Positions 7,290-57,420 of a stretch of 64,000 nt of DNA are shown here, piece by piece (position 1 is the first letter of the stretch; every line of letters starts with the position of its first letter). The DNA is taken from the NCBI RefSeq assembly GCF_006345805.1, contig NC_043008.1, forward strand, positions 68,448,001-68,512,000, given 5' to 3'. This stretch comes from Octopus sinensis (Eukaryota). Under the pieces are notes generated by a model. That model worked only from the letters and a program-made list of their open reading frames with translations. It was not told where the DNA came from and did not search any database. Position numbers and translations under genes: made by a program.

Positions 7290-8425
7290 GCATTGTCATC
7301 ACAAAGGTCACACCCGGTTTTCCTGTATGAACACCTTCTTCAAATCTATTTGTACAGCTTGAAATTGGCCAGCGTGTATATTTCACAGAAGACAATACTC
7401 AAAATGTAGTTCTGAATCCACCAGAAACCACTTCGACAGCTTTCTTCAAATTGTGCCAGTGTGATCTGTTTGCCCGAACACTGTTGTATATTGAGGTCCC
7501 CATGTACTATAACCTGGGCACACAATAGATGGAACAGACACAAGCAAGGAGCATGCATTAAGGGCTGGGAAGAAGATGCTGTCATCAGAAGTGGCACCAT
7601 TGGGCGAGTGTACACTGTGCTCCCTAATCAGCAGGAGTGCTTCTTTCTGCATCTACTGCTGCACACTGTCAGAAGTTCTATGTCATGCAGAGACTTTCAA
7701 AGACAATGGGGGAAGGCTGCACAACCTACAGCGATGCCTGTGCCAAACATGGACTACTGGAGGACGATGCTCACTGGGACCAGACAGTGGAGGGGGCAGT
7801 ATTCAGCACAACTCTAAGTCAACTGCGCCAGCTATTTTCTATCATGTTGATGACATGTGGCTTGCGTGAACCTCTCAAGCAGTGGGTGACTCACAAAACC
7901 AGCATGGCAGAGGACATCCTACAAAGGATTCAAAGGCAAACTTCAGCGGAAGTTTCCACGTTCAATAACACCATTTACAATGAGGCATTACTTGACCTGG
8001 ACACCCGAGTGCAAGCTATGGAAGGTCAAGGCAATTCCACATTTAGTCTGCCTCAACCAGAGCACGCAGCTAACAGTCTTGTAATTGAGTACCTGCAAGA
8101 AATCAGCTATGACATCGAGGAAAAGAACACAAACTGATGTAGGACCAACTGGGTGTATATAACACCATTATTTCAAGCATTGAAAATGAAAGAGGAGGTT
8201 TTTTCTTTCTGGATGCTTCAGGTGGAACTGGCAAAACATTTGTCATCAACCTTCTTCTGGCTAAACATATTGCCATAGCAGTGGTGTCAAGTGGAATTGC
8301 TACAACTCTGCTAAGTGGTGGCTGCACAGCTCATTCCTGTTTCAAACTCCCTTTGGACCAGTCTAAGAAAGAGAAGACAAACTGCAACATCAGTTGTGGT
8401 TGTATAAAAGGCAAACTTCTATGAA
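7290..8425 (+). mobile_element. Helitron Rep/PIF1-helicase relic
   Basis: VYFTEDNTQNVVLNPPETTSTAFFKLC; IGRVYTVLPNQQECFFLHLLLHTVR; TYSDACAKHGLLEDDAHW; Walker A region [20 protein letters not shown] and [24 protein letters not shown], with frameshifts and stops. Confidence 0.92.
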
Positions 8426-12440: not shown

Positions 12441-15208
12441 TGCCCTTCCTAACACCAACCATTTTATAATGTGTACTCTGTATTTTCTTGCCACCACTAA
12501 TAAGGAGGTTGCCCAGTAACTAACAATACAGGAAAATAGAAGTGTGTGGGAAGTGTTTGAAAGGGGGAAGTGGCTTTATGCCAGGTGTTGAGAGGCTAAA
12601 GTATGATAGAGAGACAAGCGCTACTGTCTTACTCTAGATGAGATACATGGTTACCTTGCATAATATAAGGGTGAGCAGAAATAGGTGGAAGATAATAAAG
12701 ATGTTTATGATGGGATGCCAGAGTGAACTCGCAAAGTATAAGAAATTGAGTAGATATGGTCAGTGAATTTTTGGTAGGTAGGGTTAGTTTTATGAAGGTG
12801 TGATGGGAGTGTTAGAGATAGAGATAAAGGTGAAGGTGCTGACTGATGAACAAGGGTGAAGGTGTGGTTGATGGGAGATAGTAGTATGGAAAGGAATAAG
12901 ATGAGAGAGATAGAAATGGCCCAGGAAAGAAGATAGATCAGAAAGTAGTGGGGTGATGTGCAAGGTGTAGGAGTGGTGGGAAGGGAGATGTAAATATGGG
13001 TGGCTATAGTGTGTGGAACATGATGGTAGATATGAGATGGCGTTGAGAATGGTAGTAGATATGTGTGGTGTTAAAGATGAAATGTGGCTGAAGAAAGATT
13101 GGCCAAAACTGACTGGAGCTTGGTGCAGCTCTCCAGCTTACCAGCTCCATTATACCATCTGATCCATGCCAGCATGGAAAACGGATGTTAAATGACGATG
13201 ATGATGATACCAGGGCCGCCTGACTGGCTCCCGTACAAGTGGTATATAAAAAGCACTATCCAAACGTGATTGATGCCCGGCCTACCTGACTGACTCCTGT
13301 GCCGGTGGCACATAAAAATCACCCACAACACTCTTGGAGTGGTTAGAGATGGGGATAAATATTTATAAGCATAGGCATGATTGTTAGTTAAGTAGCTTAT
13401 TTCTTCCCAACCTTATGGTTTTGGATTCTGTTCTACTGTGAAGCACCTTGAGCAAGTGTCTTCTACTATATCCTCAGGCTGACCAACACCTTGCGAGGAA
13501 ATTTGGTCAATGTAAACTAGAGGAAACCCTTCATATATGTGTGCTTGTGTCTTCTAGTCTCAATATTGCATGATAATTACGAATGTTTTTGTCATTCAGT
13601 GTTCATTTACAACAATCAGGTAATGTCAAGACAAGGAAACACTAACATGCATTCAGCTACACTTACTTTGAAGAAAAGTACTTTCATCATCATCATCATC
13701 ATCGTTTAACATCCATTTTCCATATTGGTATGGGTTAGACAGTTTGACTGAGGTCTGAAAAGCCAGCAGGTGCACCACACTCCAATCTGATCTGGCAATG
13801 TTTCTACAGCTGGTTGCCCTTCCTAACACAACCATTTTATAATGTGTACTCTGTATTTTCTTGCCACCACTAATAAGGAGGTTGCCCAGTAACTAACAAT
13901 ACAGGAAAATAGAAGTGTGTGGGAAGTGTTTGAAAGGGGGAAGTGGCTTTATGCCAGGTGTTGAGAGGCTAAAGTATGATAGAGAGACAAGCGCTACTGT
14001 CTTACTCTAGATGAGATACATGGTTACCTTGCATAATATAAGGGTGAGCAGAAATAGGTGGAAGATAATAAAGATGTTTATGATGGGATGCCAGAGTGAA
14101 CTCGCAAAGTATAAGAAATTGAGTAGATATGGTCAGTGAATTTTTGGTAGGTAGGGTTAGTTTTATGAAGGTGTGATGGGAGTGTTAGAGATAGAGATAA
14201 AGGTGAAGGTGCTGACTGATGAACAAGGGTGAAGGTGTGGTTGATGGGAGATAGTAGTATGGAAAGGAATAAGATGAGAGAGATAGAAATGGCCCAGGAA
14301 AGAAGATAGATCAGAAAGTAGTGGGGTGATGTGCAAGGTGTAGGAGTGGTGGGAAGGGAGATGTAAATATGGGTGGCTATAGTGTGTGGAACATGATGGT
14401 AGATATGAGATGGCGTTGAGAATGGTAGTAGATATGTGTGGTGTTAAAGATGAAATGTGGCTGAAGAAAGATTGGCCAAAACTGACTGGAGCTTGGTGCA
14501 GCTCTCCAGCTTACCAGCTCCATTATACCATCTGATCCATGCCAGCATGGAAAACGGATGTTAAATGACGATGATGATGATACCAGGGCCGCCTGACTGG
14601 CTCCCGTACAAGTGGTATATAAAAAGCACTATCCAAACGTGATTGATGCCCGGCCTACCTGACTGACTCCTGTGCCGGTGGCACATAAAAATCACCCACA
14701 ACACTCTTGGAGTGGTTAGAGATGGGGATAAATATTTATAAGCATAGGCATGATTGTTAGTTAAGTAGCTTATTTCTTCCCAACCTTATGGTTTTGGATT
14801 CTGTTCTACTGTGAAGCACCTTGAGCAAGTGTCTTCTACTATATCCTCAGGCTGACCAACACCTTGCGAGGAAATTTGGTCAATGTAAACTAGAGGAAAC
14901 CCTTCATATATGTGTGCTTGTGTCTTCTAGTCTCAATATTGCATGATAATTACGAATGTTTTTGTCATTCAGTGTTCATTTACAACAATCAGGTAATGTC
15001 AAGACAAGGAAACACTAACATGCATTCAGCTACACTTACTTTGAAGAAAAGTACTTTCATCATCATCATCATCATCGTTTAACATCCGTTTTCCATATTG
15101 GTATGGGTTAGACAGTTTGACTGAGGTCTGAAAAGCCAGCAGGTGCACCACACTCCAATCTGATCTGGCAATGTTTCTACAGCTGGTTGCCCTTCCTAAC
15201 ACCAACCA
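12441..15208. repeat. 1373-bp near-perfect tandem duplication
   Basis: Landmarks offset by 1373 (12481/13854, 13211/14584, 13681/15054, 13801/15174); junctions fall in TGCCCTTCCTAACAC(C)AACCA at 12441, 13815 and 15188. Confidence 0.95.
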
Positions 15209-15684
15209 CTCCGAGAGTGTTATAGGTGCTTTTTACATGCTGCCAGCCAGGTGGGCCTGGCATCGATCACGTTTGGATAGTGCTTTTTACATGTCACTGG
15301 AACAGGAACCAGTCAGGCGAGCCTGGCATTGATCACGTTCGGATAGCGCTTTTTACATGCCACTGGCATGGCAGCCAGTCAGCGGGCGCTGGTATCGGCC
15401 ATGTTCGGATGGTGCTTTTTACATGTCACTGGCATGGGAGCTACTCAGGCCAGTGACATGTAAAAAGCATCGTGTTATTTATTTGCCCTGAGGTGCCCAG
15501 ACACTTTCTAGTTACTGTTTGGGCCCATTGTAAACTATAACCAATGACACCATTGTACACAAAAGGACTACAAGAGCAATTTGTTTTATCAGTATTAACC
15601 AAACTTTATAACAATGGCATGTTTGAAATTTTATTCAGTCACCTTGTTTAAACTTTATTGTTCATGTAGTAAGCTATGAGATTC

Positions 15685-16575: not shown

Positions 16576-18413
16576 GTAAGTTCCCATATCTTTAACCTTT
16601 TTGTTACCATATAGGCGTAGGAGTGGTTGTGGTAAGTAGCTTGCTTACGAACCACATGGTTCCGGGTTCAGTCCCACTGCGTGGCACCTTGGGCAAGTGT
16701 CTTCTACTATAGCCTCTGGCCAACCAAAGCCTTGTGAGTGGATTTGGTAGACGGAAACTGAAAGAAGCTCCCTCGTATATATGTATGTAAGTGTGTATAT
16801 GTTTGTGTGTCTGTGTTTGTCCTCCCCAACATTGCTTGACAACCGATGGTGGTGTGTTTACGTCCCCTGTAACTTAGCGGTTTGGCAAAAGAGACTGATA
16901 GAATAAGTACTAGGCTTACAAAGAATAAGTCCTGGGGTCGATTTGCTTGACTAAAGGTGATGCTGCAGCATGGCCACAGTCCAATGACTGAAACAAGTAA
17001 AAGAAAAAGAGATATTTCTGTTGAAATACACTGGTTTTATTTCAGATTATTCTGAAAATAATAAAAGAGCAGGTGTGGGTGTGTGGGGAAGAAGTTTGCT
17101 TTTTAGTCACATGGTTTTGGGTTCAGTGACACTGTATGGCACCCTGGGCAAGTGTTTTCTACTGTAGTCTCATGTTGGACATAGCTTTGTGAGTAGTTTT
17201 GGTAGATGGAAACTGAAAAGCCCATTGTATATGTACATATATGTGTGTGTGTGTCTGTGTGTGCTTGCTTGTGTTTCTTTGTCTTGACATTGCATGATGG
17301 TTGTAAATGAGTGTCACTGTCATACAAGCAGTGTCATTTATTTCCAATATTCTACACCAAAATGCTTGGTTATGGGGAAATGTTTTCTTTCTAGGAAATA
17401 GGTGAGGGTTGGTGACAGGAAGGGCATCTGTTCTTAGAAAATCTGCTTCAGTGAGCATCATCTGACCCATGCAAGAATGGAAAAGTGGATGTTGATATGA
17501 TGATGATGATGAAAGAATTTAGTAAACAAAACTCTGCTTGCGAAGACCTGTTGAGGCAAGTGAAATCGAAATCGAACCAAATTCGATGACCGGCACCCAT
17601 GCCAATCTTTCTTCATTGGACACTAAACTTTGCTTGTGAAGACCTGTTGGAGCAAGTGAAATTGAAATTGAGCTACATTCGATGACTGGCACCCATGCCA
17701 GTGGAGCACTAACAGCTCCATCCGAGTGGGATCACTGACAGAGCAGCTGTCTGGCTTCTGTGCTAGTGGCACGTAAAAAGCACCATTTGAGCATAATAGT
17801 TTCAAATTTTGCCACAAGGGCAGCCATTTTAGGGGAGGGGGCTGAGTTGATTACATTGACCCCAGTGTTCAACTGGTACTTATTTTATCAACCTCAAAAA
17901 GATGAATGGCAAAGTCGACCTTGGCGAAATTTGAACTTGGAACATAGCAGTGGGAAAAATACCACTAAGCATTTCATCCAGCATGCTAACAATTCTGCCA
18001 CCTCACCGCCTTAATAATAATAGTAATAATAATAATAATAATAGTAATAATAACAATAATAATAATAATAATAATCATCATCATCATCGTTTAACGTCCG
18101 CTTTCCATGCTAGCATTGGTTAGACGGTTCAACTGGGGTCTGGGAAGCCAGAAGGCTGCACCAGGCCCAGTCTGATCTGGCAGTGTTTCTACAGCTGGAT
18201 GCCCTTACTAAACGCCAACCACTCCATGAGTGTAGTGGATGCTTTTTACATGCCACTGGCACGGAGGCTAGCTGGGGCCCGCGTGCCGGTGGCACGTAAA
18301 AAATAATGATAATAATAATAATAATAATGATAATAGTTGTTGTGAGGAAATGTAACTAATAATCATAATATTTATCAGTATAACTGTTTGATGTATTTAT
18401 CCTCTTTTTCTAG

Positions 18414-24821: not shown

Positions 24822-25425
24822 AGTACAGCTTGTATAGATCCATATCTTGTCTATCACTTTCCAGTGGTCTCTCACCATTCTGTACAGTCATAAAAAACCC
24901 GTCTCTGTCATCATCATTATCATCTTTTAACATCCACTTTCCATGCTGGAATGGGTTGGATGGTTTGATCAGAGCTGGTAAGCTGGGGAGCTGCACCAGG
25001 TTCCAGTCTGATTTGGTTTGGTTTCTACAGCTGGATGCCCTTCTTAATGCCAACCACTTCTCAGTGTGTGCTGGGTGCTTTTTACATGGCACCAGCACAG
25101 GACTCTTGCTGGCCAATACTCTTCACCAGGGCATATGACGTCAACACTTCTACTGTGGAGGACGGGTTTCCTTGGGTACAGCAAGGTGCCAGGTATCTCA
25201 GTCCTTTGTCATCTTGTCCAAAAGGTTCAGTGTTCTGAAGTTATCCTTCAGTACTTTGTCCCATATCTTCTTGGGTCTCAAAACAAAAAGAAAAAGGACC
25301 AGTTTTGAGCATTTGAGTCGATATAATTGATTAACCCTTCCTAACAAAATTCAGACCTCATGCTTTAGTTAGAAGCAATTGCTAGTATTATTATTATTAT
25401 TATTTTTCTTTTTGTTCTTTTCCAG

Positions 25426-25588
25426 TTATGTTCTTCCTAATCATATGCTGCTACAAATTGCAGAGATTCTACCAAGGGAACGACAAGGTGTCTTAGCTTG
25501 TTGTAACCCAATACCACCTCTGATTCGTCAGTATTTACAAGAAATTCACGGATATGTTCTAGAAGCAAGAGATATTACTATAGTGAAG
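25426..25588 (+). CDS. EXOSC10: EXOSC10 exon (YVLPNHMLLQIAEILPRERQGVLACCNPIPPLIRQYLQEIHGYVLEARDITIVK), HRDC domain
   Basis: ttttccAG acceptor, GTAAAT donor at 25589; 163 nt, phase 2/0; YVLPNHM and ACCNP.PP motifs. Confidence 0.97.
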
Positions 25589-26755
25589 GTAAATAAATAC
25601 TTGTGTTTGTTTTGGGAATGTGTTGAGGCCTAAAGGGACTGAGCTGACAGGTTGTTGATCGTTTGGGTAAGATGAAAGTACAAGATTATTCACCAGATAG
25701 TTGTAAGTTTGTAACTTATTGTGGCACTGACCGAGGTACATAAGTGCTTGCTCCACTTTGTCTGACTGACAAATGTAATACAGACTCTACTCTCATATTT
25801 TTATTATTGACAAGTAGTTACTGTATTAAATATACAATGAAGATTGTTCCAAAGTATGGAAATATCCGCTTATGGAGAATTGGAGCAACCACCCTCCATG
25901 TGCCAACATAGATTATCATCTTCAGGTGTAGGTGGGCATAATAATAATAATAATAATAATCCTTTCTACTATAGGCCTAAGGCCTGAAGTTTTGAGGGAT
26001 AGTCAATTACATCAACCCCAGTGCTCAAATGGTAAAACCCTGAAAAATGAAAGGCAAAGTTGACCTCAGCAAAATTTGAACTCAGAGCATAAAGGTGGAC
26101 AAAATGCCACTAAGCATTTTGCCTGGTATACTAATGATTCTGTCACCTTAATATTAATAATAATAATGATAATAATCCTTTGTACTATAGGTACAAGGTG
26201 TGCTAGTTCACATCGACCCCAGTGCTCAACTGGTACTTATTTTATCAACCTGAAAGGATGAAAGGCAAAGTTGACCTTGGTGAGATTTGAGCTCAGACTA
26301 TAATGGTGGATGAAATGCCGCTAAGCATTTCAGCGGGTATGCTAACAATTCTACTAACTCCCCACCTTAATAATAATAATAATAATCAACCAGGCAATTA
26401 TTAAAGACAGGGAAGAAAATGCTTGTAGACTAATAAATGTAAGTGCCTCCTCTGAGAATAATATATCTGTAAAGGAATTTGACAAACTGATATTATTATG
26501 ATTAATTGGGTAACAAGTTGACTGAATTATTAGCACATTGGGCAAAATGTTTAGCAACATTTTGTCCATTTTTATGATCTGAGTTCAAATTCCACCAAGA
26601 TCAACTCTGCCTTTCATCCTTTCTGAGTTGATAAAATTAGTACCAGTTGAGCACTGGGGCCAATGTAATTCACTTACCCACTCCAAACTTGCTGGCCTTG
26701 TGCCAAAATTTGAAACCTGTATTACTGCTATTAATTATAATGCTCTAATTTACAG

Positions 26756-33811: not shown

Positions 33812-36071
33812 TTCTTGCTATTTTCTGGAATATGTTTATATTATTGTTTTGTGTTTCTTTTTTTAGTTCTTTCCTGTTAATCAAAGTGAAGAAGAAAATA
33901 GCAAATCTACAGATGTTGAAATTGAGGTCAGTGTTTCCTTTCATGTTTTTTTATATACACACATAAATATGTATACACACATATATGTATACATACACGT
34001 TTATACATATATGTATACACACATATATATGCACATGCATATTTTATTTATATACACACATAGACACAGGCGTGGCTGTATGGTAGGAAGCTTGCTTCCC
34101 AACCACATGGATCTGGGTTCACTACCAACATTTAACAATACAGAATTTGATCAAATCCTCCTCAGAATATCATGTGTTGGCCATGTCACAAGAGAGTTTG
34201 GATAGTGAAGTTGGTAAGGTACCAGCGAGCTGTCTGAGAAATCTATGATTCATCTCTTCTCACTGTGAAGGTGCATGGCCTAGTAGTTGGGCTGTGGCAC
34301 TCACAATCGCCAGATTGTGGGTTTGAGTCTCCGAGTGGGTGGTGCATTGTGTTCTTGAGCAAAACACTTCATCTCACATTACTCCAGTTCCCCTTTCAAT
34401 CAGTGAGTATTGTTGGCCTGCTTGCCTAGCCAGCAGGGTGGTGGCATTTGAAGGCTGAAACAATGCAAATGTACATTGTGACCAGCGATAGCCTGGTCGG
34501 CCATGTGATCACGTGATCTTTTGCGTTTGGTGCATGGCTAAGATTTTAAAGTCATCCTAGATTGCATCCAGAAAAGGGTCCCTTGACGAGCTGGCATAGT
34601 GTGACTCTCAGACGTTCTCCAGCCTCCAGTCCCTATGCATTTTATCCCCTCTCTCTGCCTTTTCTACTGCTATTTTAAGGCCTCTTCCCCTCAGAGCTAA
34701 CTGGGTTTATATCACCCTCACTTGGACATTTCCAACCCACTCTTTGGACTTCTGGATTTCCCACCCTGTTCCTATCTCTCCTGCAAGTATTGACTTATAA
34801 GGGTTCAAAGGAAACATTAATGGCATGAATTAACCAATCTTTGAGGGCCTGCTCCTTCCTCAAGCAAATAAAAAAGAAATTGAAGCAATAAGGGACTCAG
34901 CAAAGGGGTTTCAGTTTATTGTTTGTTAGAGTTCAAGGTCAGCTTTGATCAAATGTTCTACATGATTCAGGCATTGTGTATCTGTCTATAACTACATTAC
35001 ACAAAGTGACCTTCTTTTTTGAAGGTAATGAGATAGATTTGTCTGCCATTTTAAGCCAACCAGTTGTTCTCATAGGAAGCTGCTTAAATGGCTTGTTTTA
35101 CCTTTTGTTTGTTTATGTTAATGCTTTCATCATCATCATTTAATGTCTGCTTTCCATGCTGGCATGGGTTGGACAGTTTCACATGGAACTGGCTAGCAGG
35201 AAGCTATATGGACTCCAACTATCTGTTGTGGCATGGTTTTGTATGACTGGATGGCCTTCCTAACAACAACTACTTAACAGAGTGTGCTGGGTGCTTTTTA
35301 CATGCCACCGACATGGTTGCGTTTATGCTTCACTGGCACAGGTGTGTTAAAGCAGCACTAGCATGGGTACTTTTTAAGTGGCACTCACACCCGAAAGGAT
35401 AAGCCTGTACGTGTGAAAGACAGTAGTTTTACCTAGCCTGATGTATCTTATCAAGTACAGCAAATTGTCACATCTCCTGGTCCCTTGTCATTTCCTCAGT
35501 GTGGTCCAGTGTCTGAAGATCCTTTCTCACCCTTTGTCCCACATCTACCTGGTCTACTCCTTCCACAGGTACCCTCCACAGTTAGCTTGGCACTTCTTTA
35601 TGCAGCTGTCCTCATCCATATGCATCACATGACTAAAAAGCTTTATATATATATATATGTATATATATATCATCATCATCATCGTTTAACATCTGCTTTC
35701 CATGCTAGCATGGGTTGGACGATTTTGACTGAGAGCTGGCGAACCAGATGGTTGCACCAGGCTCCAATCTTGATTTGGCAGAGTTTCTACAGCTGGATGC
35801 CCTTCCTAACGCCAACCACTCCGAGAGTGTAGTGGGTGCTTTTTATGTGCCACCGGCACGGGAGCCAGTCAGGCGGTACTGGCAATGACCTCGCTCGAAT
35901 CCTTTAACACATGCCACCAGCACAGGTGCCAGTAAGGCGACTTTGGTTACGATCACGCTTGAATGGTGCCCTTTTATGTGCCATTGGCACGGAAGCCAGT
36001 TGGTTGCTCTGGCAGGGGCCAGTCAGGCGGTACTGGCAACTGATTTATATATTTACATTTCCTTTCTATAG

Positions 36072-36141
36072 AAACACTGGAAACTTTTAAAGAAGCAAAA
36101 ACCGAAGAAAAAGATTTGTTCAGAATCAACGTCAAATAAAG
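36072..36141 (+). CDS. EXOSC10: Probable EXOSC10 exon (KHWKLLKKQKPKKKICSESTSNK)
   Basis: cctttctatAG acceptor, GTAATT donor at 36142; 70 nt, phase 0/1; the only open frame; contains the WKL motif. Confidence 0.75.
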
Positions 36142-36379
36142 GTAATTATAGTTACATCTAAATTTAATTTGAGAATTTTTGTTTCAGTGTTGAAGTATAA
36201 GGGAAGGTAATAAAAACCACCACATCATTTTCAAAGTTGGAGAAAATACAATTTATTCAGTTATTTCACTTCAATGAATTCTGATTTTAAATAAGTATTT
36301 TGAAATGTTAAAATAGATAAACTGTAAACAATTCCAAGACCTTGTTAGAACATGCACACTGATGAAGAGGATTGTTGGT

Positions 36380-36560
36380 TGTTAGTATTTTCAGCTATAG
36401 TAATAAGTATTAGTGGTTATGCTAATAAGTATTGGTGCTTATAGTAATTAGTATTGGTAGCTATATTGTAGTTAGTGTTGGTGGTTATAGTAGTTAGTAT
36501 TGTGGGTTATAGCAGTTAATGTTTGTGGCTGTAGTAGTTAGTATTGATGGCTGTTGGTGT
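36380..36560. repeat. ~22-bp degenerate minisatellite (TAGTAGTTAGTATTGGTGGTTA), reverse complement of the array at 62990-64000
   Basis: About seven recognisable units. Confidence 0.7.
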
Positions 36561-39350
36561 TAATGGTACAAAATATATTCAAATATTGGTTTCAAATTTT
36601 GGCACAAGGCCAGCATGTTCGGGATGGGGGCTAAGTCTATTACATTGACCCCAGTGCTCAATTGGTACTCATTTCGTCAACTCCAAAAGGACGAAAGGTT
36701 GACCTTATCGGAATTAGAACTCAGAATGTAAGGAAGGATGAAATACTGCTAAGCATTTTACCTGGCATTCTAATGATTCTACCAGCCTGCTGCCTTCAAT
36801 ATATTCAAATACTGATATATATGTATAGAAGGAAATATTTTTTTGCATTTAAACATCAAGTATTTTGCTCTCATTATATTGGGTGGAATATTTCTTCAAA
36901 TAACATGACAGAATGTGAATATGTTGGACATTGAATATAGTTGTTATTTATTTCTATAATTGTTACATCAAATGGGGTATAGGTAGCCCGTGGCTAGAAC
37001 TCTAAGAGTACAGCTTTTCTCCATTCCTAGATCCGTGACATTGATGAGTTTGATTTAAAATTTATGTACATGATGATATGCATCAAAGGTCACATGAACC
37101 AAAAATTCAAGTTTGATAACTAAAATAGTGCAGTTGTCTTCCCCTGTTCTCAGCTAGACTAACAAAATTTTTCATTTTTTTTTGTCTTTGGTCAGTAAGT
37201 GTTATTTCCTATTTGCTTCTATCTAGAAATCAAAGCAAATCACTACTATTCTCTTCGAATTTTGCTTTTGCGACCTGGACATCAGTGTTTTGAAACTGAC
37301 CTATTTTCCATTACATTTTAGACTGATTCAGCACTGAGTTGCTGAAGCAGAAATATCCTTATAACAAATATTCTGCTCAATACCACAGATTTGCTTCTCA
37401 GTTGCTTGACCTTTACCACTTGAGCATGTCTTTTAGAAGCTGACAATATCTTGAGCATATATCTTAGTGACTGACAAAATGTGCATCACTGATCATGTGA
37501 AGGAATAGTGGGGGAGCATCATAGCCATGTGTTGAGAGGGATTCTTTAGGGTTTGAATGAATGTAACAAAAGCAAAGTTTGAAGGAAATACTAGCCATTT
37601 TTCATACTTTGTTGGGGATAAGCAAATAGGGAATAACAGTTTCTGCTCAAGGACAAAAATCTTGTTACTCAGTGTAATAATTACACACAATTTCTAGAAA
37701 AAATTATGATAGTTATTTAATATTGTCTCTACATTGAAGGAAGGTATTATTATATTTCAAGATGTGTGGTCTCTGGTGTTAGTCTGTTCCTTTTCCAACT
37801 TTTGGAGTTGTCAGAAAATTTATTTGTAAGCCTGAACTAAAAATATATAACAGAAAGAAAATCCTTAGAATTCTAAAAAACTAATAATGATCTGAAACAG
37901 CAGAACAAACAATATTGGGTGCAGACATGATTGTATGGTTTAGATGTTCACTTCTGAACCATGTAGTTCCAGGTTCTCTCCCACTCTTTGCCTCTTTCAA
38001 CAAGTGTCTTTTGCTTTAGCCTTGGGCTGACCAATGCCATATGAGTGAATTGTAAGTGATGGAAACTGTGTAGAAGCCTGCTGTACGTGTTTCTGTGTGA
38101 ATGTGTGTATGTGTGTGAATCTGTGTGTGTCTGTGTCTTTGTCTTGTCACAGCTTGGCAACTGGTGTTGATCTGTTATTGTTGCTGCAGCCTAGCAGTTT
38201 AGCAAAAGAGACTGATAGAATAAGTGCCCCAGCATGGCCACAATCGATTGACAGAAACATGTAAAAGAAAACAGAATTAATAAAATTTCATCATCATCAT
38301 CATTGTTTGCCATCCACTTTTCCATTGTTCAATGGGTCAGATGGAATTTGTTGAGGTGGATTTTTTTACAGCCAGATGTCCTTCCTGTTTCCAAGTAAGC
38401 TAATATTTCTACATGACTTGACATGTCTCCATGGAAGATTGGAAACAAAGGACACTGCTTGCATAATGATGATTTGTTTGCAATAGTCATGTAAAGGCAA
38501 GGCAAGGAGACAGTAATGCAGGCACACTTACATAAATATATATCTATGTACATAGTTGAAATTTGTAGAAAAAAAAAGCCGAAGACAGGTGTATGAACAA
38601 CAAGCAGGTGTATTTGATGCTCAGAAAAGTGAAAAATCTTTTATGTTTTGAGCTTATGCTCTTCAGCAGAAAAGAATAAGAAAAAGTAAACAGAGAGAAA
38701 ATAAAAAAAACTTGTGGATCATCATCATCATCATCATCATCGTTTAACGTCTGCTTTCCATGCTAGCATGGGTTGGACGATTTTGACTGAGGGCTGGCGA
38801 ACCAGATGGCTGCACCAGGCTCCAATCTTGATTTGGCAGAGTTTCTACTGCTGGATGCCCTTCCTAATGCCAAAATAAAAATAAATAAATATAAATAGAT
38901 ATAAATATATATGACATGTAAAAAGCACCCACTACACTCTTGGAGTGGTTGGCATTAGGAAGGGCATCCAGCTGTAGAAATCTTGCCAGATCAGATTGGG
39001 GACTGGCAAACTAGTAGGCTGCGCCAGGCAAACCATCCAACACATGCCAGCATGGAAAACAGACGTCAAACGATGATGATGATATTAGTGTAAAACTAAT
39101 GGATCTGCTTGTTTTTTCACCTGTTTTCGTATTTTGTTTTCAGTAAATCTGAACTACACACGCACACACACACACACACACACAGAAGATAAGAGGAGTT
39201 TAGGTTAAGGTGTCTCAAAATAATAGGTATGCATTTTGAGTGCTCAAATAGGTGCCATCAAAATTCCAGTCAGAACAGTGGTTGAAGTTGTGGTTGTATG
39301 AATGTCTTGTTCAAAAAATGGCTAATGGTAGCTTCCCTTTGAGTCAGCCA

Positions 39351-39516
39351 GACTAGGGCATTTGATTTCATTTAATTCAATCTCAATATTTAGCTACGTG
39401 ACAAATGGTAGAAATGGTACAAAAAGATACTATCTTTACTAGTTTTGTACCATTTTTACCATTTGTCATATAGCTAAATTTTTAGATTGAATTAAATGAA
39501 ATCAAATACCCTAGTC
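39351..39516. repeat. Near-perfect 74-bp-arm palindrome with an 18-nt loop
   Basis: 39351-39424 pairs with 39443-39516 with only a few mismatches. Confidence 0.9.
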
Positions 39517-40468
39517 CTGCCTTGACTAATTGTTTGCCTTTCCTCACTACTTTAATCTTTATATATATATATACATACACACACATATGTATATATTTAT
39601 TTATTCATATATATTTATATATATCATGAAGTATATTTGCCACTTAAATGTGGCTAACCCTTAAGGGTTAATATACTTCACGATGTCTTGCAGCTACTGT
39701 TTATACCTCGCTCAGAGATTTATTATTGTTTATTTATATATATATATTGTCATCTCATCTTTTAATATCTCTTCTCCATAATGGTATGGGTTGGACAGTT
39801 TGACAGGAGTTGGTCAGCTGGAGAGCTGCCCTGGCTCCATTTGTCTATTTTGGCATGTTTTCCATGGCTGGATACTGTTCCTAACCATTATAAAGAGTGT
39901 ACTGGGTGCTTTTATGTGGTATGGGCACTTTTATGTGACACTGGCACAGGTGCTTATACATGGCACATGCACCTATGCTTTTATGTTGGTGACAGTACCC
40001 ACGAGCCCACAAGACTAGAATCTCTTGGTTGAGAGAGGGATAGGATGCAAAAGACATGCTTGTATGTATAGACAGCCACAATTTTGCTTTACTTAGCTTG
40101 ATGTGTCGTCTCAAGCACAGCAAATATATATATTTATAGGCACCTGGTTTAGTGGTTAGAGCATTGGGCTCACAATCATGAGGCAGTGAGTTTGATTCCT
40201 GGACTGTGCTGTGTTCTTGAGCAAGACACTTCCTTTCACATTACTCTAGTTTACTCAGCTATAGAAATGAGTTGTGATGTCACTGGAAGCAAGCTGTATT
40301 GGCCTTTGCCTTTCTCTTGGATAACATTAGTGGCATGCAGAGAAAAGGCTGGTATGCATGGGTGACTACTGGTCTTCCATAAAAAACCTTGCATGGACTT
40401 GTGCCTCGGAGGGTAACTTTCTAGATGCAGTCCCCATGAACATTCATGACCAGAGGGGGTCTTTACTG

Positions 40469-40513
<45 letters not shown>

Positions 40514-40516
<3 letters not shown>

Positions 40517-41364
40517 TTATATATAGAGGGCATTATACATACATGCCAGAGGGCATTATACATACATGCCACACGCTAAGAGGGACAATTAGTCATTTCT
40601 GCCAAAAATTTTACTAATCCCACCGAATGCAATTTTTCAAAGTAAAATTAGTAAAATTAGTAAAATATTTGGTAGAAATGACTAATTGTCCCTCTTAGCG
40701 TGTGGCATGTATGTATAATGCCCTCTGGCATGTATGTATAATGCCCTCTATATATAAATTAATATGTTCAATAAGAAATAATTATTTTCGAAATTTTTTC
40801 TCTTATGAGGTCTTTCACGCTATCTACCTGACAATTTCTTGTTAAGTTTTCCTTATTAAGTAGTTGTCCTTAATTGCTAAATTTTTATTCCGAAAAAACT
40901 TTTCCTTTCCCGAAATGCAATTCGTAAAAGTCTGCCATTACCGGATGTAATATATGTAAACTCACCCATGTGCTTCGTTGATGTTGATCAGTTAGCTGAT
41001 CGGCTTAAGCGAGGCAGGGTCGTTTATTTATGATACGTCCAGGCCTGCTGATGAATACGTAAGTATGAAATCACTGTGATACAGGTCTATATTTTTTTAA
41101 ATGTCTTACTTTGAAAAATTGCATTCGGTGGGATTAGTAAAATTTTGGTAGAAATGACTAATTGTCCCTCTTAGCGTGTGGCATGTATGTATAATGCCCT
41201 CTGGCATGTATGTATAATGCCCTCTATATATAAATTAATATGTTCAATAAGAAATAATTATTTTCGAAATTTTTTCTCTTATGAGGTCTTTCACGCTATC
41301 TACCTGACAATTTCTTGTTAAGTTTTCCTTATTAAGTAGTTGTCCTTAATTGCTAAATTTTTAT
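40514..41364 (+). mobile_element. Young partial-tandem plus inverted element (Penelope-like/retrozyme-like) between (TA)n tracts
   Basis: Direct repeat 40657-40888 = 41133-41364 (period ~476); 40514-40645 is the reverse complement of 41106-41236; hammerhead in the unique part; CpG-rich. Confidence 0.75.
41041..41088 (+). ncRNA. Type I hammerhead ribozyme
   Basis: Stem I AGGCCTG (41041-47)/CAGGTCT (41082-88); core CTGATGA (41048-54); stem II ATAC-GTAA-GTAT; GAAA (41067-70); stem III ATCA-CTG-TGAT; cleavage triplet AUA, predicted cut between 41081 and 41082. Confidence 0.88.
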
Positions 41365-44029
41365 ATATATATATATATATATATGCCGTCCAACTCACGC
41401 TAGCATGGAAAGCGGATGTTAAACGATGATGATGATGATATGCCATGTAAAAAGCATTAAGTCCACTCTGCTGAGTGGTTGCTGTCAGGGAGGGCACCCA
41501 GTTGTAAAAATCCTGTCAAAACAGTCACAGAAGCCTGGTGCAGGCTTCTGCTTGGCTGGCTCTTGTGAACTGTCCCACCTATGCTAGCATGGAAGGCGGA
41601 TGTTAAACGATGATGATGATATATAAACGATGACCTTCTTTCAGTTTCTGTCTACCACATCCACTCTGAAGGCTTTGGTTGGCCTGGGGGCTTAAGTAGA
41701 CACTTGTGCAATGTGCCACACAATGGAAGAGAATCCAGAACATGTGGTTGTGAAGCACTCTTCTTACCACACAGCCATCCCTGCACCTATAGTCTTGCTT
41801 GTGCCTAAAGCCATGACTGTAACAATATGTAAATGGCATTTGTCTCATGAAAGAGATTTTTGTTATGTTTATAGGATGGTGTCATGAAAGTATGAAGTGT
41901 TGGGAGTATGAACTTAACTTGCATCAGAAAACTGACATGTGATCAAACAAATGGTCTGTATACGATTGCTAGAAATAGCAGCCAAAACCATACTGTCTTA
42001 AAAAATTGAAAAGGCACATGATAATGTAGACCTAAGCACATCAACATCATCATCATTTAACATCCATTGTCCATGCTGGCATGGGTTGGACAGTGACCAG
42101 AGCTGGCAAGCTGGTGGGTCTGTACCAGATTCTAGTTTGATTTGGCATGGTTCCTACAGCTGGATGTCCTTCCTACCAACAACCACTTTTTAGAATGTGC
42201 CGGGTGCTTTTACATGACACTGTATGGGCACTTTTACATAGCACTGCACAGGTGCTTTCATGAGGTACCGCACAAGTGCTTTTATGTGGAACTGCCATCA
42301 GTGCTTTACATCACCAGAAGGATTGGTCTTAAAACTTTAGCTGTGGGGTACGTGTCTTCTCAAGTACAGCCAGATGCCAGTTCTCTCAGTCCTTTGTCAT
42401 CTTACCTGTTTAACAAAATAAAAGACAGGGTGGCCATAAATGTGTTGCCTTTGATTATGTCTCCTCAATCAAGGTTGACATTGGACTAAGCAACAACATC
42501 AGCATTGCTCAACCTGCTAGAAATAGCAGCCAAATCTCTCTCAAATCACACAATACCATTTAAAAAAGGAAAGCCACATTGGACTATGTAGTCTTAGCGT
42601 TAGAAAAAAATGGGATGGTCATAGCTGGAATGCCTTTTGATCATAGGTTTGCTCATTGATGACTGACCTGTGGTTAAACAATGACATCACCATAACACAT
42701 CTAACAGCACACAAACATTCTAATTTAGAAAATGTTGGAAAATACACAGCTTAATTGTTAATTAGTAATTAGTAGAGTGTTAATTAGATGTTTAACAGTA
42801 TTGCAATTTCACTTATGATAATAGGTTAATGGACAGTACTTATGGAAATTTACTTTGCTGTTTATTCTCCCGGCATTGATAAAATATGTACCAATATGTA
42901 CCAGTAATATACTGGATGTCAATTATGCCAGCTGTATATTATCCCTTACCTCCACAAGGGAGGTCTCTTTTAGGCTAACTGCAGATGAAAGAATGGTCTG
43001 ATGATGGCAAACTGACAAATAGGAAATGAGTAGAGAGGATTTCTTAGTGACCCTCTCTAGTGCTGGGTCCATGATAAGAGAGAGGCAATGATTAAGGACA
43101 GGAAGGTCAGCAAGCCCCAAAATAGAATTTGTGAGCAAGACATGGGCTCTGATGTATCTTGGTGGACAGTAACTTCAAATATGAACTGAGCTAAGCTACG
43201 ATGTGCCCCCAACTCTTGTCAGCAAGGAAAATTGGATGTAAAAATGGTGGTGATGATGTGTGAGTGTATGCATATGTATACACTTTTGCACTATGTGTGT
43301 GTGTGTGAGTAATAAGAAGCTTGCTTTCCAACCACATGGTTCTGGATTCAGTTCCATTGCATGGTACCTTGGACAAGTATCTTCTGTAGCCTCAGGCCAA
43401 CCAAAGCCTTGTGAGTGGATTTGGTAAATGGAAACTGAAAGAAGCCTGTCGTATATATATAAATATATATATATATGTGGTTGGCGTTAGGAAGGGCATC
43501 CAGCTGTAGAAACTCTGCCAGATCAAGATTAGAGCTTGGTACAGCCATCTGGCTCACCAGCCCTCAGTCAAAATCGTCCAACCCATGGAAGGCAGACGTT
43601 AAACGATGATGATGTGTGTGTGTGTATGGTTGTCCCACCGTTTGACAACTGGTGTTAGTGCGTTTACACCCCTGTAACTTAGTAGTTCTACGAAAGAGAC
43701 TAACAAAGTAAGTACCAGGCTTAAAAAATATAAGTACTGGGTTTGAGTCATTCAACTGAAAATTCTTCAAGGTGGTGCCCCAGCATGGCCACAGTCTAAT
43801 GACTGAAACAAGTAAAAACAACAACCCATCCCCTGCAAAAAAAGAAAAACAAAAAAAATTATGATATATGTAATTTAATTCCAGCCTCTGACTCTCAGGA
43901 TTGTTTCAGTTCTATATTTACATGATATTATTTATTGCTTTATTTACTTTTGAGATTCGCCGTTCCTTACAAATTACTAGTTGAATCTTGTTTGTAATTT
44001 GTTGTTGATGTCATTTGTTTTATTTACAG

Positions 44030-44100
44030 AAACAGAATTGTCTGTAAATGATGAAAGTCCACAAGAAGATCCTGGAGAAATTATTCCTCTGTCTTTCAGG
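44030..44100 (+). CDS. EXOSC10: Probable EXOSC10 exon (ETELSVNDESPQEDPGEIIPLSFR)
   Basis: tttatttacAG acceptor, GTAAGG donor at 44101; 71 nt, phase 1/0, fits the neighbouring exons. Confidence 0.72.
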
Positions 44101-44981
44101 GTAAGGCAACTGTATATATATATATATACACATACACACACATATATACATACATATACGAGATGGGTGCTGAAAAGTCTCTGGTTTTGGGTAAAAGAAA
44201 ATACAGGAAGATTAGTTAATTATGATGTTATTCACCATATTCCCCTCTCCGATTCACACACTTACTATAGCAGTCCTTCAGTTTTTCTAATCCCTGTAAA
44301 AAGAACTCAGAAAGTTGGGCCTCCAACCAAGCCTTTCGTGATACCCTTAAAGCCAGAAACTTTTCAGCACCCCTCATATATTTATAATATAAATTGGACA
44401 TGGGCTATCGTTGTATTCTTTCTTGTCTTGAGGTTCACAGCCAAATGGCTGTGTGGATTCGCGTGAAAAATGGCACACATATGGAGACGGGTGCATAGAT
44501 TGGAATGCGGTTTGTATTTTTTTCCTAGCCCCCATAGTTAACGAGACAATCCATTTTAAAACTTTTTCTAATGGAATTCCCCTGTTTGAAACAACTAGTT
44601 GCTCACACAGCCAGCATATACCATTTCGCTAGCAACAAAGGGAGTACAGAATGACAGTCAGCCAAAACTTTCACTATGCTGTCTCTCTTCTTTCACCTCT
44701 TTGTGGGATTAATAATCTTAATCTTTAGTGACAGTTTCTTATTCAAACTACATAATAGGCAGAATTGTCGGAATAAAACAGAAGGGTTTTTGAGGGAGAT
44801 CTGGCTGCTATTTCTACCAGGTCTAGCTCCCATGTAGAGGTCTGAACTTAATTTTCATTCACATATTTGCATTTCAAAAATTTAACATCTTTTCTGTAAA
44901 TCAACAATCGTAAACACATACACACGTGCGAGCATGCATGCACGCCTGCACACACACACACACACACGTCCATTTTATATA

Positions 44982-48869: not shown

Positions 48870-49735
48870 ATCATTATCATCATCCTCGTTTAATGTCTGT
48901 TTTCCATGCTAGCATGGGCTGGATGGTTTGACCAGGGTCTGGGAAGCCAGGAGGCTGCACCAGGCTCCAGTCTAATCTGGTAGTGTTTCTACAGCTGGAT
49001 GCCCTTCCTAACGCCAACCACTCCGTGAGTGTAGTGGGTGCTTTTTACATGCCATGATCACTTGGTACTTTTTACGTGCCACTGGCACAGGTATCACAAT
49101 TACAATTTCCATTTGATTTTCATTTTGATGTTGATGTACTTGAGACTCAATAGGTCTCCTCAAGCACAGCAGGTCGCCCTATGATCCAAGGTACTTTTGA
49201 ATGGGCTGGGGCTGGTTATGCTAAACTGGTGTAGGATATAGCCGTGAACTCACTTTATTTGCCAGGTCTTCGCAGTCACAGCATATCTCCAGAGGTCTCA
49301 TTCTTTTGTCATTGACTCTGTGAAGCCCAATGTTCGAAGGTCATGCTTGACCACCGCATCCCATGTCTTCCTAGGTCTATCTCTATTCTAGATTCCTTCA
49401 ACTTTTTGGGAGTGGCACTTCTTCACACATCTCCCCTCTGCCATCCATAGTACATGAACATACCAGCGCAAACATCTCTCTTGTATGCCACACCCTATGC
49501 TTCTTATGTCCAACATTTCTCTCAGGGTACTTACACTGTCGTGTGTGCACACTGACATTACACATCCAGCAGATCATGCTAGTTTCATTTCTTTCAAGCC
49601 TACGCATGTCCTCTGCAGTCACGGCCCATGTTTCACTACTGTGAAGCATGGCAGTTCACACACATGCATAATACAATCTACCTTTCACTCTGAGCGAGAG
49701 GCCCTTTGGCACCAGTAGGGGTAGAAGCTTTCTAA
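48870..49735 (-). mobile_element. RTE LINE 3' fragment
   Basis: MLHSSETWAVTAEDMRRLERNETSMICWMCNVSVHTRQ, downstream RGRPRKTW region and (CAT)n tail. Confidence 0.85.
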
Positions 49736-53500: not shown

Positions 53501-54023
53501 GGTGGCACATAAAAAGCTCCTTTCAAACATTGGGCAATATGCTGTGCTTGAGATGTCTTGAGGTTTGAAAAGCAAAGTTTGCCATGGTGGCACATGAAAA
53601 GCTCCCTTCGAATGTTAGGCAATATGCTGTGCTTGAGACGACCCATCAAGCCAAGTGAAATCGTCATAGTCATAGCTGATGCCAATGTCGTGTAACTGGC
53701 ACCCATGCTGGTGGCACATAAAAAGCACCCTTCAAACTTTGGGCCTCATGGAGGAGTGACATGTGACCGAGACCTTTGGCAAGCCAAGTGAGATCGTAGT
53801 CCTGCCCAATGCACCTGTGCTGGTGGTATGTAAAAAGTACCCACTACATTCTTGGAGTGGTTGGTGTTAGGAAGGGCAGATTGGAACCTGGCTTTCCAAT
53901 TTTCAGTTAAACTGTCCCACCCATGCCGGCAAGGAAAATGGATGTTAAATGATGATAATGATGATGATGATGTTGTTGTTGTTGTTAATTATATATTGAC
54001 AGTTTTATTTCTCATTGATTCAG

Positions 54024-54279
54024 CCACCTTTGAAGAAGAAACTCATGAAAAAGATGGCCAGGATGGAAGAGGAACGGAAAAAGATGAAAATGATGGTACC
54101 CGAGGACACTATTGAAACAGTAGAGATCAGTGATTCAGAAAATTCTGATGTAGAAATAATTGAAGAGAAGATATCCCCAAGTGTGAACATCAGTAAGGAA
54201 CCTGGTAGATTTGGCAAGAAAAATCTCACTGATATTAATCCCTTCAACTATGAGGATGTTAACCTCAAGATGTTTAGTG
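54024..54279 (+). CDS. EXOSC10: EXOSC10 exon (PPLKKKLMKKMARMEEERKKMKMM...DINPFNYEDVNLKMFS), basic/acidic C-terminal region with candidate NLS
   Basis: gattcAG acceptor, GTGAGT donor at 54280; 256 nt, phase 0/1; NPFNYEDVNLKMFS matches the conserved PF/YDY...K.F motif near the RRP6 C-terminus. Confidence 0.87.
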
Positions 54280-54833
54280 GTGAGTAATAATGATGATATT
54301 CCCCTCTATTGTAGGCACAAACCCTAATGTTTTGTGGGAGGGAGGTAATCGATTACATCAACCCCCCCCCCACTCAGTGCTCAACTGGTACTTTATCGAT
54401 CCCCAAAAAATGAAAGGCAAATGCAACCTTGGTGGGAGAATAATAATAATATTCCTTTCCACTATAGACACAGGCTAGTAGATTTCATCCCCCCCCCACA
54501 ATGCTTGATTGCTACTTTTTTCACCAATCACAGAAGAATGAAAGGCAAAGTTGACCATGGCAGAGTTTGAAAAATGGATGAAATACTGCTAAGCATTTTG
54601 CCTGGTATACTAAAATAATTATAATAATAATAATGATAGTTTATAATTTAAGCAGAATGCCAGCATTTTTGTGGGAAGTGGGGGGTGATTATGTTGACCC
54701 CAGTATTGACTGGTACTATATTTTATAGATTCTCAAAGGGATGAAAGACAAAATTGCCCTTAGAATGTAAAGCATTTTTTCTGATGCTCTAATGATTCCG
54801 CCAATCTACTGCCTTCAATAATAATAATAATAA

Positions 54834-56589: not shown

Positions 56590-57420
56590 TCATCTTCATC
56601 ATCATCATCATCATTTAACGTCCGCTTTTCATGCTAGCATGGGTTGGACAATTTGATTGAGGACTGGCAAACAAGATGACTGCACCAGGCTCCAATATGA
56701 TTTGGCAGAGTTTCTACAGCTGGATGCCCTTCCTAACGCCAACCACTCCGTGAGTGTAGTGGGTGCTTTTACGTGCCACCAGCACGAGAGCCAGTCAGGC
56801 AGTACTGGCAACGACCACAATCAAATGGTGTTTTTTACGTGCCACCTGCACAGGAGCCACTCCAGCGGCACTGGCAATGACCTCACTCGAATGTTTTTTC
56901 ACGTGTCACTGGCATTTTTACATGTCACTGGCACAGAAGCCAGTTAGCTGCTCTGGCAATGATCACACTCAGATGGTGCTCTTAGCACTCCATTGGCACG
57001 GGTGCCAGTCATTGAATTTGATTCAATTTCGATTACCTCAACAGGTCTTCGGAAGCAGAGTTTAGTGTCCAATGAAGGAAAGGTACGCATAAGTGGGCTG
57101 CTTACACCCCTGGCATAGGCCACGGGTTATGGTCTCACTTGGTTTACTAGGTCTTCTCATGTACTGCATATTTCCAAAAGTCTCGGTCACTAGTCATTGC
57201 CTTGGTGAAGCCTAATGTTCTAAGGTCATGCTTCACCACCTCATCCCAGGTCTTCCTGGGTCTACCTCTTCTACAGGTTCCCTCAACCGCTAGGGTGTGG
57301 CACTTTTTCACACAGCTATCTTTATCCATTCTTGCCACATGACCATACCAACGCAGTCGTCTCTCTTGCACACTACATCTGATGCTTCTTAGGTCCAACT
57401 TTTCTCTCAAAGTACTTACA
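56590..57420 (-). mobile_element. RTE LINE 3' end (ORF C-terminus, 3' UTR and tail) in the last EXOSC10 intron
   Basis: STLREKLDLRSIRCSVQERRLRWYGHVARMDKDSCVKKCHTLAVEGTCRRGRPRKTWDEVVKHD; (CAT)n tail at ~56590-56615. Confidence 0.9.

Follow-up and report, generated by a model that had tools for sequence, protein, structure and literature searches.

A type I hammerhead motif in a small tandem and inverted repeat of a putative EXOSC10 intron of Octopus sinensis

A 64,000-nucleotide stretch of the Octopus sinensis genome (NCBI RefSeq assembly GCF_006345805.1, contig NC_043008.1, positions 68,448,001 to 68,512,000 of the forward strand), referred to below as the window, carries on its plus strand a 48-nt motif (41041–41088) in which all elements of a type I hammerhead ribozyme are present and paired. 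The motif lies within an 856-bp composite repeat that has no coding capacity, is flanked by (TA)n on both sides and is situated in a putative intron of the homologue of EXOSC10 (exosome component 10, RRP6), the nuclear exosome nuclease. It is probable, at roughly 0.7, that a small retroelement of the retrozyme or Penelope-like element (PLE) kind, non-coding and non-autonomous, inserted in sense orientation into (TA)n of this intron, that the hammerhead serves it for self-processing, and that this copy is now a passenger there. A link to PLEs and retrozymes had been drawn in a preliminary description of this DNA, made from its letters, and is borne out by the local repeat architecture, which that description did not mention.

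The hammerhead motif and the repeat that holds it

Read directly, the 48 nt are parsed as AGGCCUG-CUGAUGA-AUAC-GUAA-GUAU-GAAA-UCAC-U-GUGA-U-A-CAGGUCU (Table 1). Helix I comprises 7 bp, six of them Watson–Crick and one G.U (41043.41086), while helix II comprises 4 bp with a GUAA tetraloop and an A–U as the innermost pair (10.1–11.1). Helix III begins at A15.1–U16.1 and reads A15.1-UCA(CUG)UGA-U16.1 in the monomer. The triplet preceding the predicted cleavage site is AUA (U41080, A41081), H17 being A and not G. The 13 invariant positions of the core are all preserved, and every part of the structural definition of a type I hammerhead (the core boxes, A15.1–U16.1, H17, and three helices) is found. 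The type follows from the order of the strands, in which helix I is open and both the 5′ and the 3′ ends exit there. What the preliminary description had stated about the sequence of this motif, namely the stems, boxes, GUAA loop, and AUA triplet at 41041–41088 and the palindromic stem III ATCAC-T-GTGAT at 41070–41080, is correct on direct reading; the A–U pair that it had noticed at the base of stem II is read here as A10.1–U11.1 and counted among the features of a slow ribozyme. No tertiary contacts between loop 1 and loop 2 are recognisable in the hammerhead. The GUAA of loop 2 (41059–41062) is complementary to UUAC at 41106–41109, 18 nt 3′ of helix I, and a 4-bp pseudoknot of the type that stabilises some hammerheads is conceivable, although so short a match is expected by chance in AT-rich DNA.

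The frequency of such motifs was estimated with an RNAmotif-style descriptor that strings together CUGANGA, one bulged base if present, helix II, GAAA, helix III (compact, with the A–U pair included), U, H, and helix I. With loose thresholds (helix I at least 4, helix II at least 3, and helix III at least 1 bp) it finds one match on the two strands of the window, 41041–41088 (I=7, II=4, III=4), and no second hammerhead on either strand at these relaxed settings. Across 4000 random windows matched in base composition, the match rate for helices I, II, and III was 0.028 per window at 4, 3, and 1 bp, 1.25e-3 at 5, 4, and 2 bp, and 2.5e-4 at 6, 4, and 4 bp, with no match among the 4000 at 7, 4, and 4 bp. 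Extrapolation with a pairing probability of ~0.39 per added base pair gives ~3e-5 motifs per window, a rate that dinucleotide effects could lift ~1.4-fold (cf. 1.54 expected core pairs). Such a rate is far too low to explain a match in a single window, but over a 2-Gb genome the broad descriptor would meet about one motif of this kind, so the context of the hammerhead matters. In a control, 31 metagenome sequences fit the pattern CTGATGA-N4-GTAA-N4-GAAA-N9-TAC, and 0 of the 31 form three helices. The two boxes by themselves are frequent in the window, with CTGATGA followed by GAAA within 6–30 nt at nine sites vs. 1.5 expected from shuffles; the other eight sites are without hammerhead helices by the descriptor, and GATGATGA-type motifs in SINE-like (short interspersed element-like) repeats are suspected to account for part of the excess.

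The composite repeat that holds the hammerhead (40509–41364, 1.3% of the window) comprises 1.5 direct copies of a 476-bp unit and a partial copy in inverted orientation, and (TA)n borders it left and right. The outer end of the inverted copy runs into (TA)n at the unit-internal “tatatataaatt” (41226–41237), and the right (TA)n junction is at the TA-rich unit end “aaattttta” (41356–41364); both junctions thus coincide with TA-rich places of the unit. The repeat sequence is continuous across the predicted cleavage site, and there is no open reading frame (ORF) above ~50 aa in the 856-bp block. For PLE insertions, it was described that partial tandems form pseudo-long terminal repeats (pLTRs), with an inverted 5′-truncated copy adjacent at the 5′ end, that hammerheads are located in the pLTRs, and that (TA)n is a preferred target (Craig et al., 2021, PMC8557442). 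The same signature, consisting of a 5′-truncated partial tandem, an adjacent inverted truncated copy, and a (TA)n target, is found here.

The predicted RNA structure of the repeat is biased to the strand of the hammerhead. The unit was permuted to start at the cleavage site, folded as a circle, and compared with 200 dinucleotide shuffles. The minimum free energy (MFE) of the plus strand is −131.7 kcal/mol vs. −89.0 ± 5.5 for the shuffles (z = −7.8), with 64% of bases paired; the minus strand reaches −100.1 kcal/mol, with 7 G.U pairs vs. 19 on the plus strand. Within the unit, 40886–41152 (267 nt) is predicted to fold as a three-way junction in which the hammerhead forms one arm, the other parts being a long closing stem and an imperfect hairpin, and helices I and II of the hammerhead are retained in the MFE structure of this domain. 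Its energy is −89.1 kcal/mol (z −7.3) on the plus strand and −64.9 kcal/mol (z −4.65) on the minus strand. When the intron was scanned in 267-nt windows, absolute z values were below 2 nearly throughout, save for the hammerhead element and a few DNA-level inverted repeats, in which the strands are alike. The plus-strand bias is an argument that selection has acted on RNA from the strand of the hammerhead, which is what one would expect of a retrozyme-type RNA.

Other observations also concern self-paired RNA in this intron. Two 267-nt segments, 38802–39068 (z ~ −7/−8) and 39334–39600 (z ~ −18/−17), are extremely self-paired on both strands; inverted repeats at the DNA level or SINEs in inverted pairs are the presumed explanation. 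Within the element, the inverted and direct copies give a near-perfect sense-strand hairpin at 40509–40765, with 110-nt arms of 97% complementarity and a 37-nt loop, from which dsRNA or small RNAs could arise. Rfam returned sub-threshold plant-miRNA matches for 40548–40726 (e.g., MIR7504, 66.8 bits vs. a gathering threshold of 83); a plant miRNA precursor was rejected, and the matches are taken to reflect a generic long hairpin or inverted repeat.

For elements of this kind, a life cycle has been proposed in which transcription of tandem copies would yield multimers that the hammerheads cut to unit length, often as dimers formed through a palindromic helix III. The unit-length RNAs would then be circularised and copied into the genome by the reverse transcriptase (RT) and GIY-YIG endonuclease of an autonomous PLE. 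For the copy described here, the template of reverse transcription may have been circular or uncleaved multimeric RNA, with priming by TA-rich microhomology at a nicked (TA)n, and the inverted fragment may have come from twin priming. A circular or longer-than-unit template together with TA microhomology priming would account for the presence of more than one direct unit, for the continuity over the cleavage site, for the inverted piece, and for the split (TA)n. In the RNA of the intron, slow monomer cleavage at 41081/41082 would still be possible, and it is expected to be too slow to disturb splicing.

Cleavage competence and alternative explanations

Several results weigh against the retroelement interpretation and should be considered together. 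Self-BLAST finds no further copies of the repeat block elsewhere in the 64-kb window. There is no Pfam domain in the ten longest ORFs of the intron and no RT or GIY-YIG among them. An exact look-up of the 47-aa ORF of the element gave no match, nor did the ten concatenated ORF translations of the element give one in a collection of 5.8 billion proteins. An exact 23-mer is absent from metagenome contigs, and the single match to a degenerate pattern in viral contigs has a 4-bp helix II without helices I and III and is not a hammerhead. No relatives were thus found in the metagenome, viral-contig, and protein collections searched, and the evidence comes from a single locus. The (TA)n flanks make a target-site duplication unrecognisable, and the left one might be an expansion of a TA-rich stretch belonging to the unit. 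The check proposed in the preliminary description, a search with the Rfam hammerhead model, turned out negative. In cmscan against Rfam 15 (4227 families), no family of any kind reached its gathering threshold in the window, and none of the hammerhead families (Hammerhead_1 RF00163, HH9, HH10, type II, and type III) appeared even at E≤10 in 1.5 kb or in 91 nt; since a 14.6-bit match had E=7.3 in the 91-nt search, the hammerhead models score below ~15 bits there. This miss likely results from A–U in place of G–C at 10.1–11.1, AUA in place of GUC, the long helix III, and the absent conserved loop nucleotides. The motif also departs from the consensus of the minimal hammerhead ribozyme of PLEs (min-HHR; Cervera and de la Peña, 2014, PMC4209133), in which helix II has 6–8 bp, a bulged base follows A9, G10.1–C11.1 is “highly conserved,” and helix III is minimal or absent; here helix II has 4 bp, no base is bulged after A9, the corresponding pair is A–U, and there is a genuine helix III of 4–5 bp, the palindromic nature of helix III being the only shared feature. 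Finally, in the MFE structure of the isolated 48-mer, helices I and II are kept, while U4–U7 are paired with A15.1–A15.4 in place of helix III. This non-catalytic pairing (−12.1 kcal/mol) is favoured over the hammerhead fold (−9.7 kcal/mol) by 2.4 kcal/mol, and the exact hammerhead fold makes up ~1% of the ensemble.

The prediction is different for two molecules. Two 48-mers cofold into a classical double hammerhead (−31.1 vs. 2 × −12.1 kcal/mol), in which helix III forms between the molecules (5+5 bp with a U.U mismatch in the middle) and both strands contribute to each active site, in agreement with the earlier remark that the palindromic stem III is suited to dimers. As the window contains a single hammerhead, this locus offers no possibility of dimer cleavage in cis. 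Judged from the sequence, the hammerhead appears to have only slow-ribozyme features: A10.1–U11.1, the AUA triplet, the competing fold, no loop–loop contact, and no partner in cis. The most serious alternative accepts the same retroelement origin and assumes that the hammerhead is a fossil, held in the alternative fold with no dimer partner and catalytically dead or negligible. The replacement of the highly conserved G10.1–C11.1 speaks for it, as do the non-catalytic MFE structure with its small share of hammerhead fold, the lack of an Rfam match, and the AUA triplet, which is a natural cleavage triplet but the slowest of the natural triplets tested (PMC1636495). Moreover, hammerheads of the PLE type and those of amphibians cleave poorly as monomers, and only one hammerhead is present in cis. 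Against a dead copy stand the 13 intact invariant core positions and the 99.6% identity of the repeat copies, which leaves little time for decay. In addition, helix III (4 bp and a triloop) is more stable and longer than in the dimer-dependent hammerheads of amphibians or PLEs. The axolotl hammerhead HHR_Amex2, in which helix II has a U.U mismatch as its basal pair, cleaves 22% in 1 h as a monomer and efficiently as a dimer; it is thus a natural precedent for a helix II base other than G–C in an active hammerhead. On balance, this alternative is considered unlikely, and a retrozyme- or PLE-kind element whose ribozyme may still cleave slowly is preferred.

It may also be asked whether the motif has any ribozyme ancestry. 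A chance look-alike would mean that the boxes and helices arose fortuitously in an AT-rich, self-complementary repeat. The expectation of about one motif per 2 Gb with the broad descriptor, the structure-rich surroundings, which make flanking helices cheaper, and the negative Rfam search are compatible with this. The rate per window is, on the other hand, only ~3e-5, and lower still inside an 856-bp element whose PLE-type architecture is independent of the motif. None of the 31 core-pattern controls pairs, and the strand of the hammerhead is the more structured one. Furthermore, real hammerheads number in the thousands in invertebrate genomes with retrozymes or PLEs, which sets the prior for a real one far above the chance rate. 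A fortuitous origin is accordingly regarded as quite improbable.

The preliminary description had proposed that the pre-mRNA of the gene might be cut co-transcriptionally, with an effect on splicing or with cleaved ends fed to the decay machinery. In this explanation, the hammerhead would be an exapted intronic ribozyme whose cut tunes splicing or makes exosome substrates, as feedback on the gene. In its most specific form, a monomer-active hammerhead would sever a fraction of EXOSC10 pre-mRNAs and deliver 2′,3′-cyclic-phosphate and 5′-OH ends to the nuclear exosome and Xrn2, a young, lineage-specific feedback that we find hard to credit. The sense-strand location in what is plausibly an intron of EXOSC10 agrees with exaptation, there are precedents for self-cleaving ribozymes in introns that affect their host gene (e.g., Cpeb3, PMC10919898), and the stable three-way junction could help folding. 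Support for the proposal is thus limited to position and strand. On the opposing side, the insertion looks recent, with copies of 99.6% and 97.8% identity bounded by a split microsatellite, and a young mobile-element insertion of this kind gives no sign of selection for a host function. Cleavage is predicted to be slow, whereas the ~2.9 kb to the 3′ splice site would be transcribed in roughly a minute at typical RNA polymerase II rates. According to PMC2995048, which cites Dye et al. (2006) and Fong et al. (2009), splicing tolerates slow cleavage by an intronic hammerhead and is aborted only when the ribozyme is very fast; intronic retrozyme copies are, besides, commonplace. Exaptation is therefore judged very improbable, and the location in the gene of a nuclear exosome nuclease would be of biological interest only if the ribozyme were fast in vivo.

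If the retroelement interpretation is true, its value lies mainly in annotation, as it flags in this genome a retrozyme- or PLE-derived family that is missed by Rfam-based pipelines. The locus would be one further copy of a widespread class, the hammerhead-bearing, PLE-dependent, non-autonomous retroelements. It also offers a clean example, in a very small element, of the tandem and inverted, (TA)n-targeted insertion signature, and the continuity across the cleavage site bears on the question of whether the template is circular or uncleaved multimeric RNA.

Host gene and other repeats of the window

Exon-like ORFs on the plus strand at ~6.1–6.5, 11.2–11.5, 16.4–16.6, 18.3–18.6, and 25.4–25.6 kb correspond to the 3′–5′ exonuclease and HRDC domains of EXOSC10/RRP6. 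The proteins that match them contain PF01612 and PF00570 and bear the names exosome component 10 or RRP6; the best show 63–64% identity, coral among them. The exon of the HRDC domain (25373–25630) aligns with residues 530–579 of the 885-residue human protein, and verification extends only to the exons up to this domain. From this position it follows that ~300 poorly conserved C-terminal residues must be encoded downstream. The preliminary description had placed the hammerhead in the transcribed strand of an intron at 36142–44029; the motif does lie on the coding strand of the homologue, and the proposed intron has GT..AG borders, good splice signals at its flanks, and an open frame across the junction. 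The exon upstream of the intron has a good acceptor (ttcctttctatag/) and the donor aag/gtaatt, the exon downstream ends in cagg/gtaagg, and the frame across the junction reads ..KPKKKICSESTSNK-E-TELSVNDESPQEDPGEIIPLSFR. The flanking exons (36071–36141 and 44030–44101) are open only in the frame ending at 36140, with the split codon G/AA, and the frame of the longer ORF meets a stop after five codons. There is no homology support from solved EXOSC10 sequences for these two exons, and none for a candidate C-terminal exon at 54000–54284; a sense-strand position within an intron of EXOSC10 is hence probable rather than proven.

Table 1. Coordinates of the putative host intron, the composite repeat, and the hammerhead (positions in the window).
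Feature	Positions	Strand	Basis or remark
Putative EXOSC10 intron	36142–44029	+	GT..AG; frame open across 36141/44030, acceptor ~36070
Left (TA)n, ~27 units	40471–40525	.	TRF, sequence; would be one half of the target microsatellite
Inverted partial unit copy	40509–40645	-	Reverse complement of 41106–41241, 97.8% identity
Inverted/direct junction, AGTAAAATT x 2.9	40641–40666	+	TRF, sequence
Upstream direct copy, 5′-truncated, without hammerhead	40656–40888	+	Equals 41133–41364, 99.6% identity, offset 476 bp
Full 476-bp unit	40889–41364	+	34% GC; hammerhead at unit positions 153–200
Closing stem of 267-nt domain, 5′ strand	40890–40939	+	Predicted to pair with 41100–41148
98-nt imperfect hairpin, third arm at far end of helix I	40943–41040	+	Adjoins helix I, no spacer
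Helix I, 5′ strand AGGCCUG	41041–41047	+	Direct reading, descriptor
Core box C3–A9, CUGAUGA	41048–41054	+	Direct reading
Helix II AUAC/GUAU and loop 2 GUAA	41055–41066	+	A10.1–U11.1 base pair
Core box G12–A15.1, GAAA	41067–41070	+	Direct reading
Helix III palindrome AUCAC-U-GUGAU	41070–41080	+	Monomer 4 bp and CUG loop; dimer 5+5 bp round U.U mismatch
Predicted scissile bond A17 (41081) / C1.1 (41082)	41081–41082	+	Standard hammerhead numbering
Helix I, 3′ strand CAGGUCU	41082–41088	+	Direct reading, descriptor
Closing stem of 267-nt domain, 3′ strand	41100–41148	+	Predicted to pair with 40890–40939
Right (TA)n, ~11 units	41362–41384	.	Followed by SINE-like repeat from 41385

Other repeats are also present in the window. 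The SINE-like family has a length of ~240 bp and is represented by 41385–41625 and at least 20 further copies (e.g., 776–958, 18074–18255, 35127–35307, 35666–35845, 48873–49060, and 56598–56770). It contains an internal duplicated segment of 49–54 nt (41388–41436 and 41572–41620) ending in ...GTTAAACGATGATGATGAT. The copies often adjoin (TA)n or (CA)n, and one stands directly after the right (TA)n of the hammerhead element. In an upstream intron, 12632–13892 and 14005–15232 give the same sets of ORF translations, shifted by 1373 bp, and so point to a recent tandem duplication of ~1.3 kb. Introns of the EXOSC10 homologue also hold a fragment similar to PIF1 helicase at 8143–8421 on the plus strand (PF05970, E 1.9e-20), which suggests a Helitron-type remnant, and a weak DDE_3 transposase match at 10717–11010 on the plus strand (E 0.005, below the curated cutoff), which suggests a Tc1/mariner-type remnant. 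Three further assignments were considered for the hammerhead-bearing block and its surroundings and were rejected. A miniature inverted-repeat transposable element or foldback element was set aside because the outer ends of the block are not inverted repeats of one another, and a Helitron because the 5′-TC and 3′-CTRR ends are missing. An autonomous PLE nearby was discarded as well, as the tested ORFs contain no RT or GIY-YIG and elsewhere only the PIF1-like fragment and the weak DDE_3 match occur.

Comparison with known hammerhead-bearing systems

Intronic self-cleaving motifs on the sense strand are known from the amniote hammerheads HH9 and HH10 of Rfam and from the hepatitis delta virus-like ribozyme of CPEB3. 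The location of the hammerhead described here is similar. Those ribozymes are, however, single-copy, deeply conserved, and detectable with Rfam models, whereas this one has no Rfam match and is situated inside a young repeat insertion. The satellite hammerheads of newt, Schistosoma (SM-alpha), and cave cricket (RF00163) are likewise of type I, associated with tandem repeats, and equipped with a helix III capable of forming dimers. In contrast to them, the present hammerhead gives no reportable Rfam score and does not belong to a long satellite array.

The element resembles PLE pLTRs (PMC4209133, PMC8557442) in its insertion architecture, in the (TA)n target, and in the presence of a hammerhead in the repeated non-coding part. 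It differs from an autonomous PLE in that there is no ORF for RT or GIY-YIG and the whole block measures 856 bp. Non-LTR retrozymes were described as few-hundred-bp non-coding repeats with a type I hammerhead, a GC content below 45%, and a highly self-paired RNA (Cervera and de la Peña, 2020, PMC7229834). The size expected of a retrozyme unit is about 150–450 bp, with a maximum near 1 kb. According to a recent preprint, retrozymes are derived from the pLTRs of PLEs, the consensus lengths of their families range from 51 to 972 bp, monomer derivatives are frequent, and ~43% of the Xenopus copies overlap introns (Li et al., 2026, 10.64898/2026.07.22.740005). The octopus element shares with non-LTR retrozymes the type I hammerhead in a 476-bp non-coding unit of 34% GC, the direct head-to-tail repeat, and the self-paired plus-strand RNA. 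Helix I of ~6–7 bp, helix II of 4 bp, and a palindromic, dimer-compatible helix III are further common features, as is the intronic location, which is frequent among retrozyme copies. The differences concern the attached inverted fragment, a helix III of 4–5 bp instead of the usual 1–2 bp, and the lack of recognisable contacts between loops 1 and 2. It is also worth noting that retrozymes are recognised by at least two tandem hammerheads, whereas the octopus element has 1.5 units and one hammerhead, so that excision of a unit is impossible here. At most, it corresponds to a “monomer derivative” of a retrozyme in the sense of Li et al. (2026).

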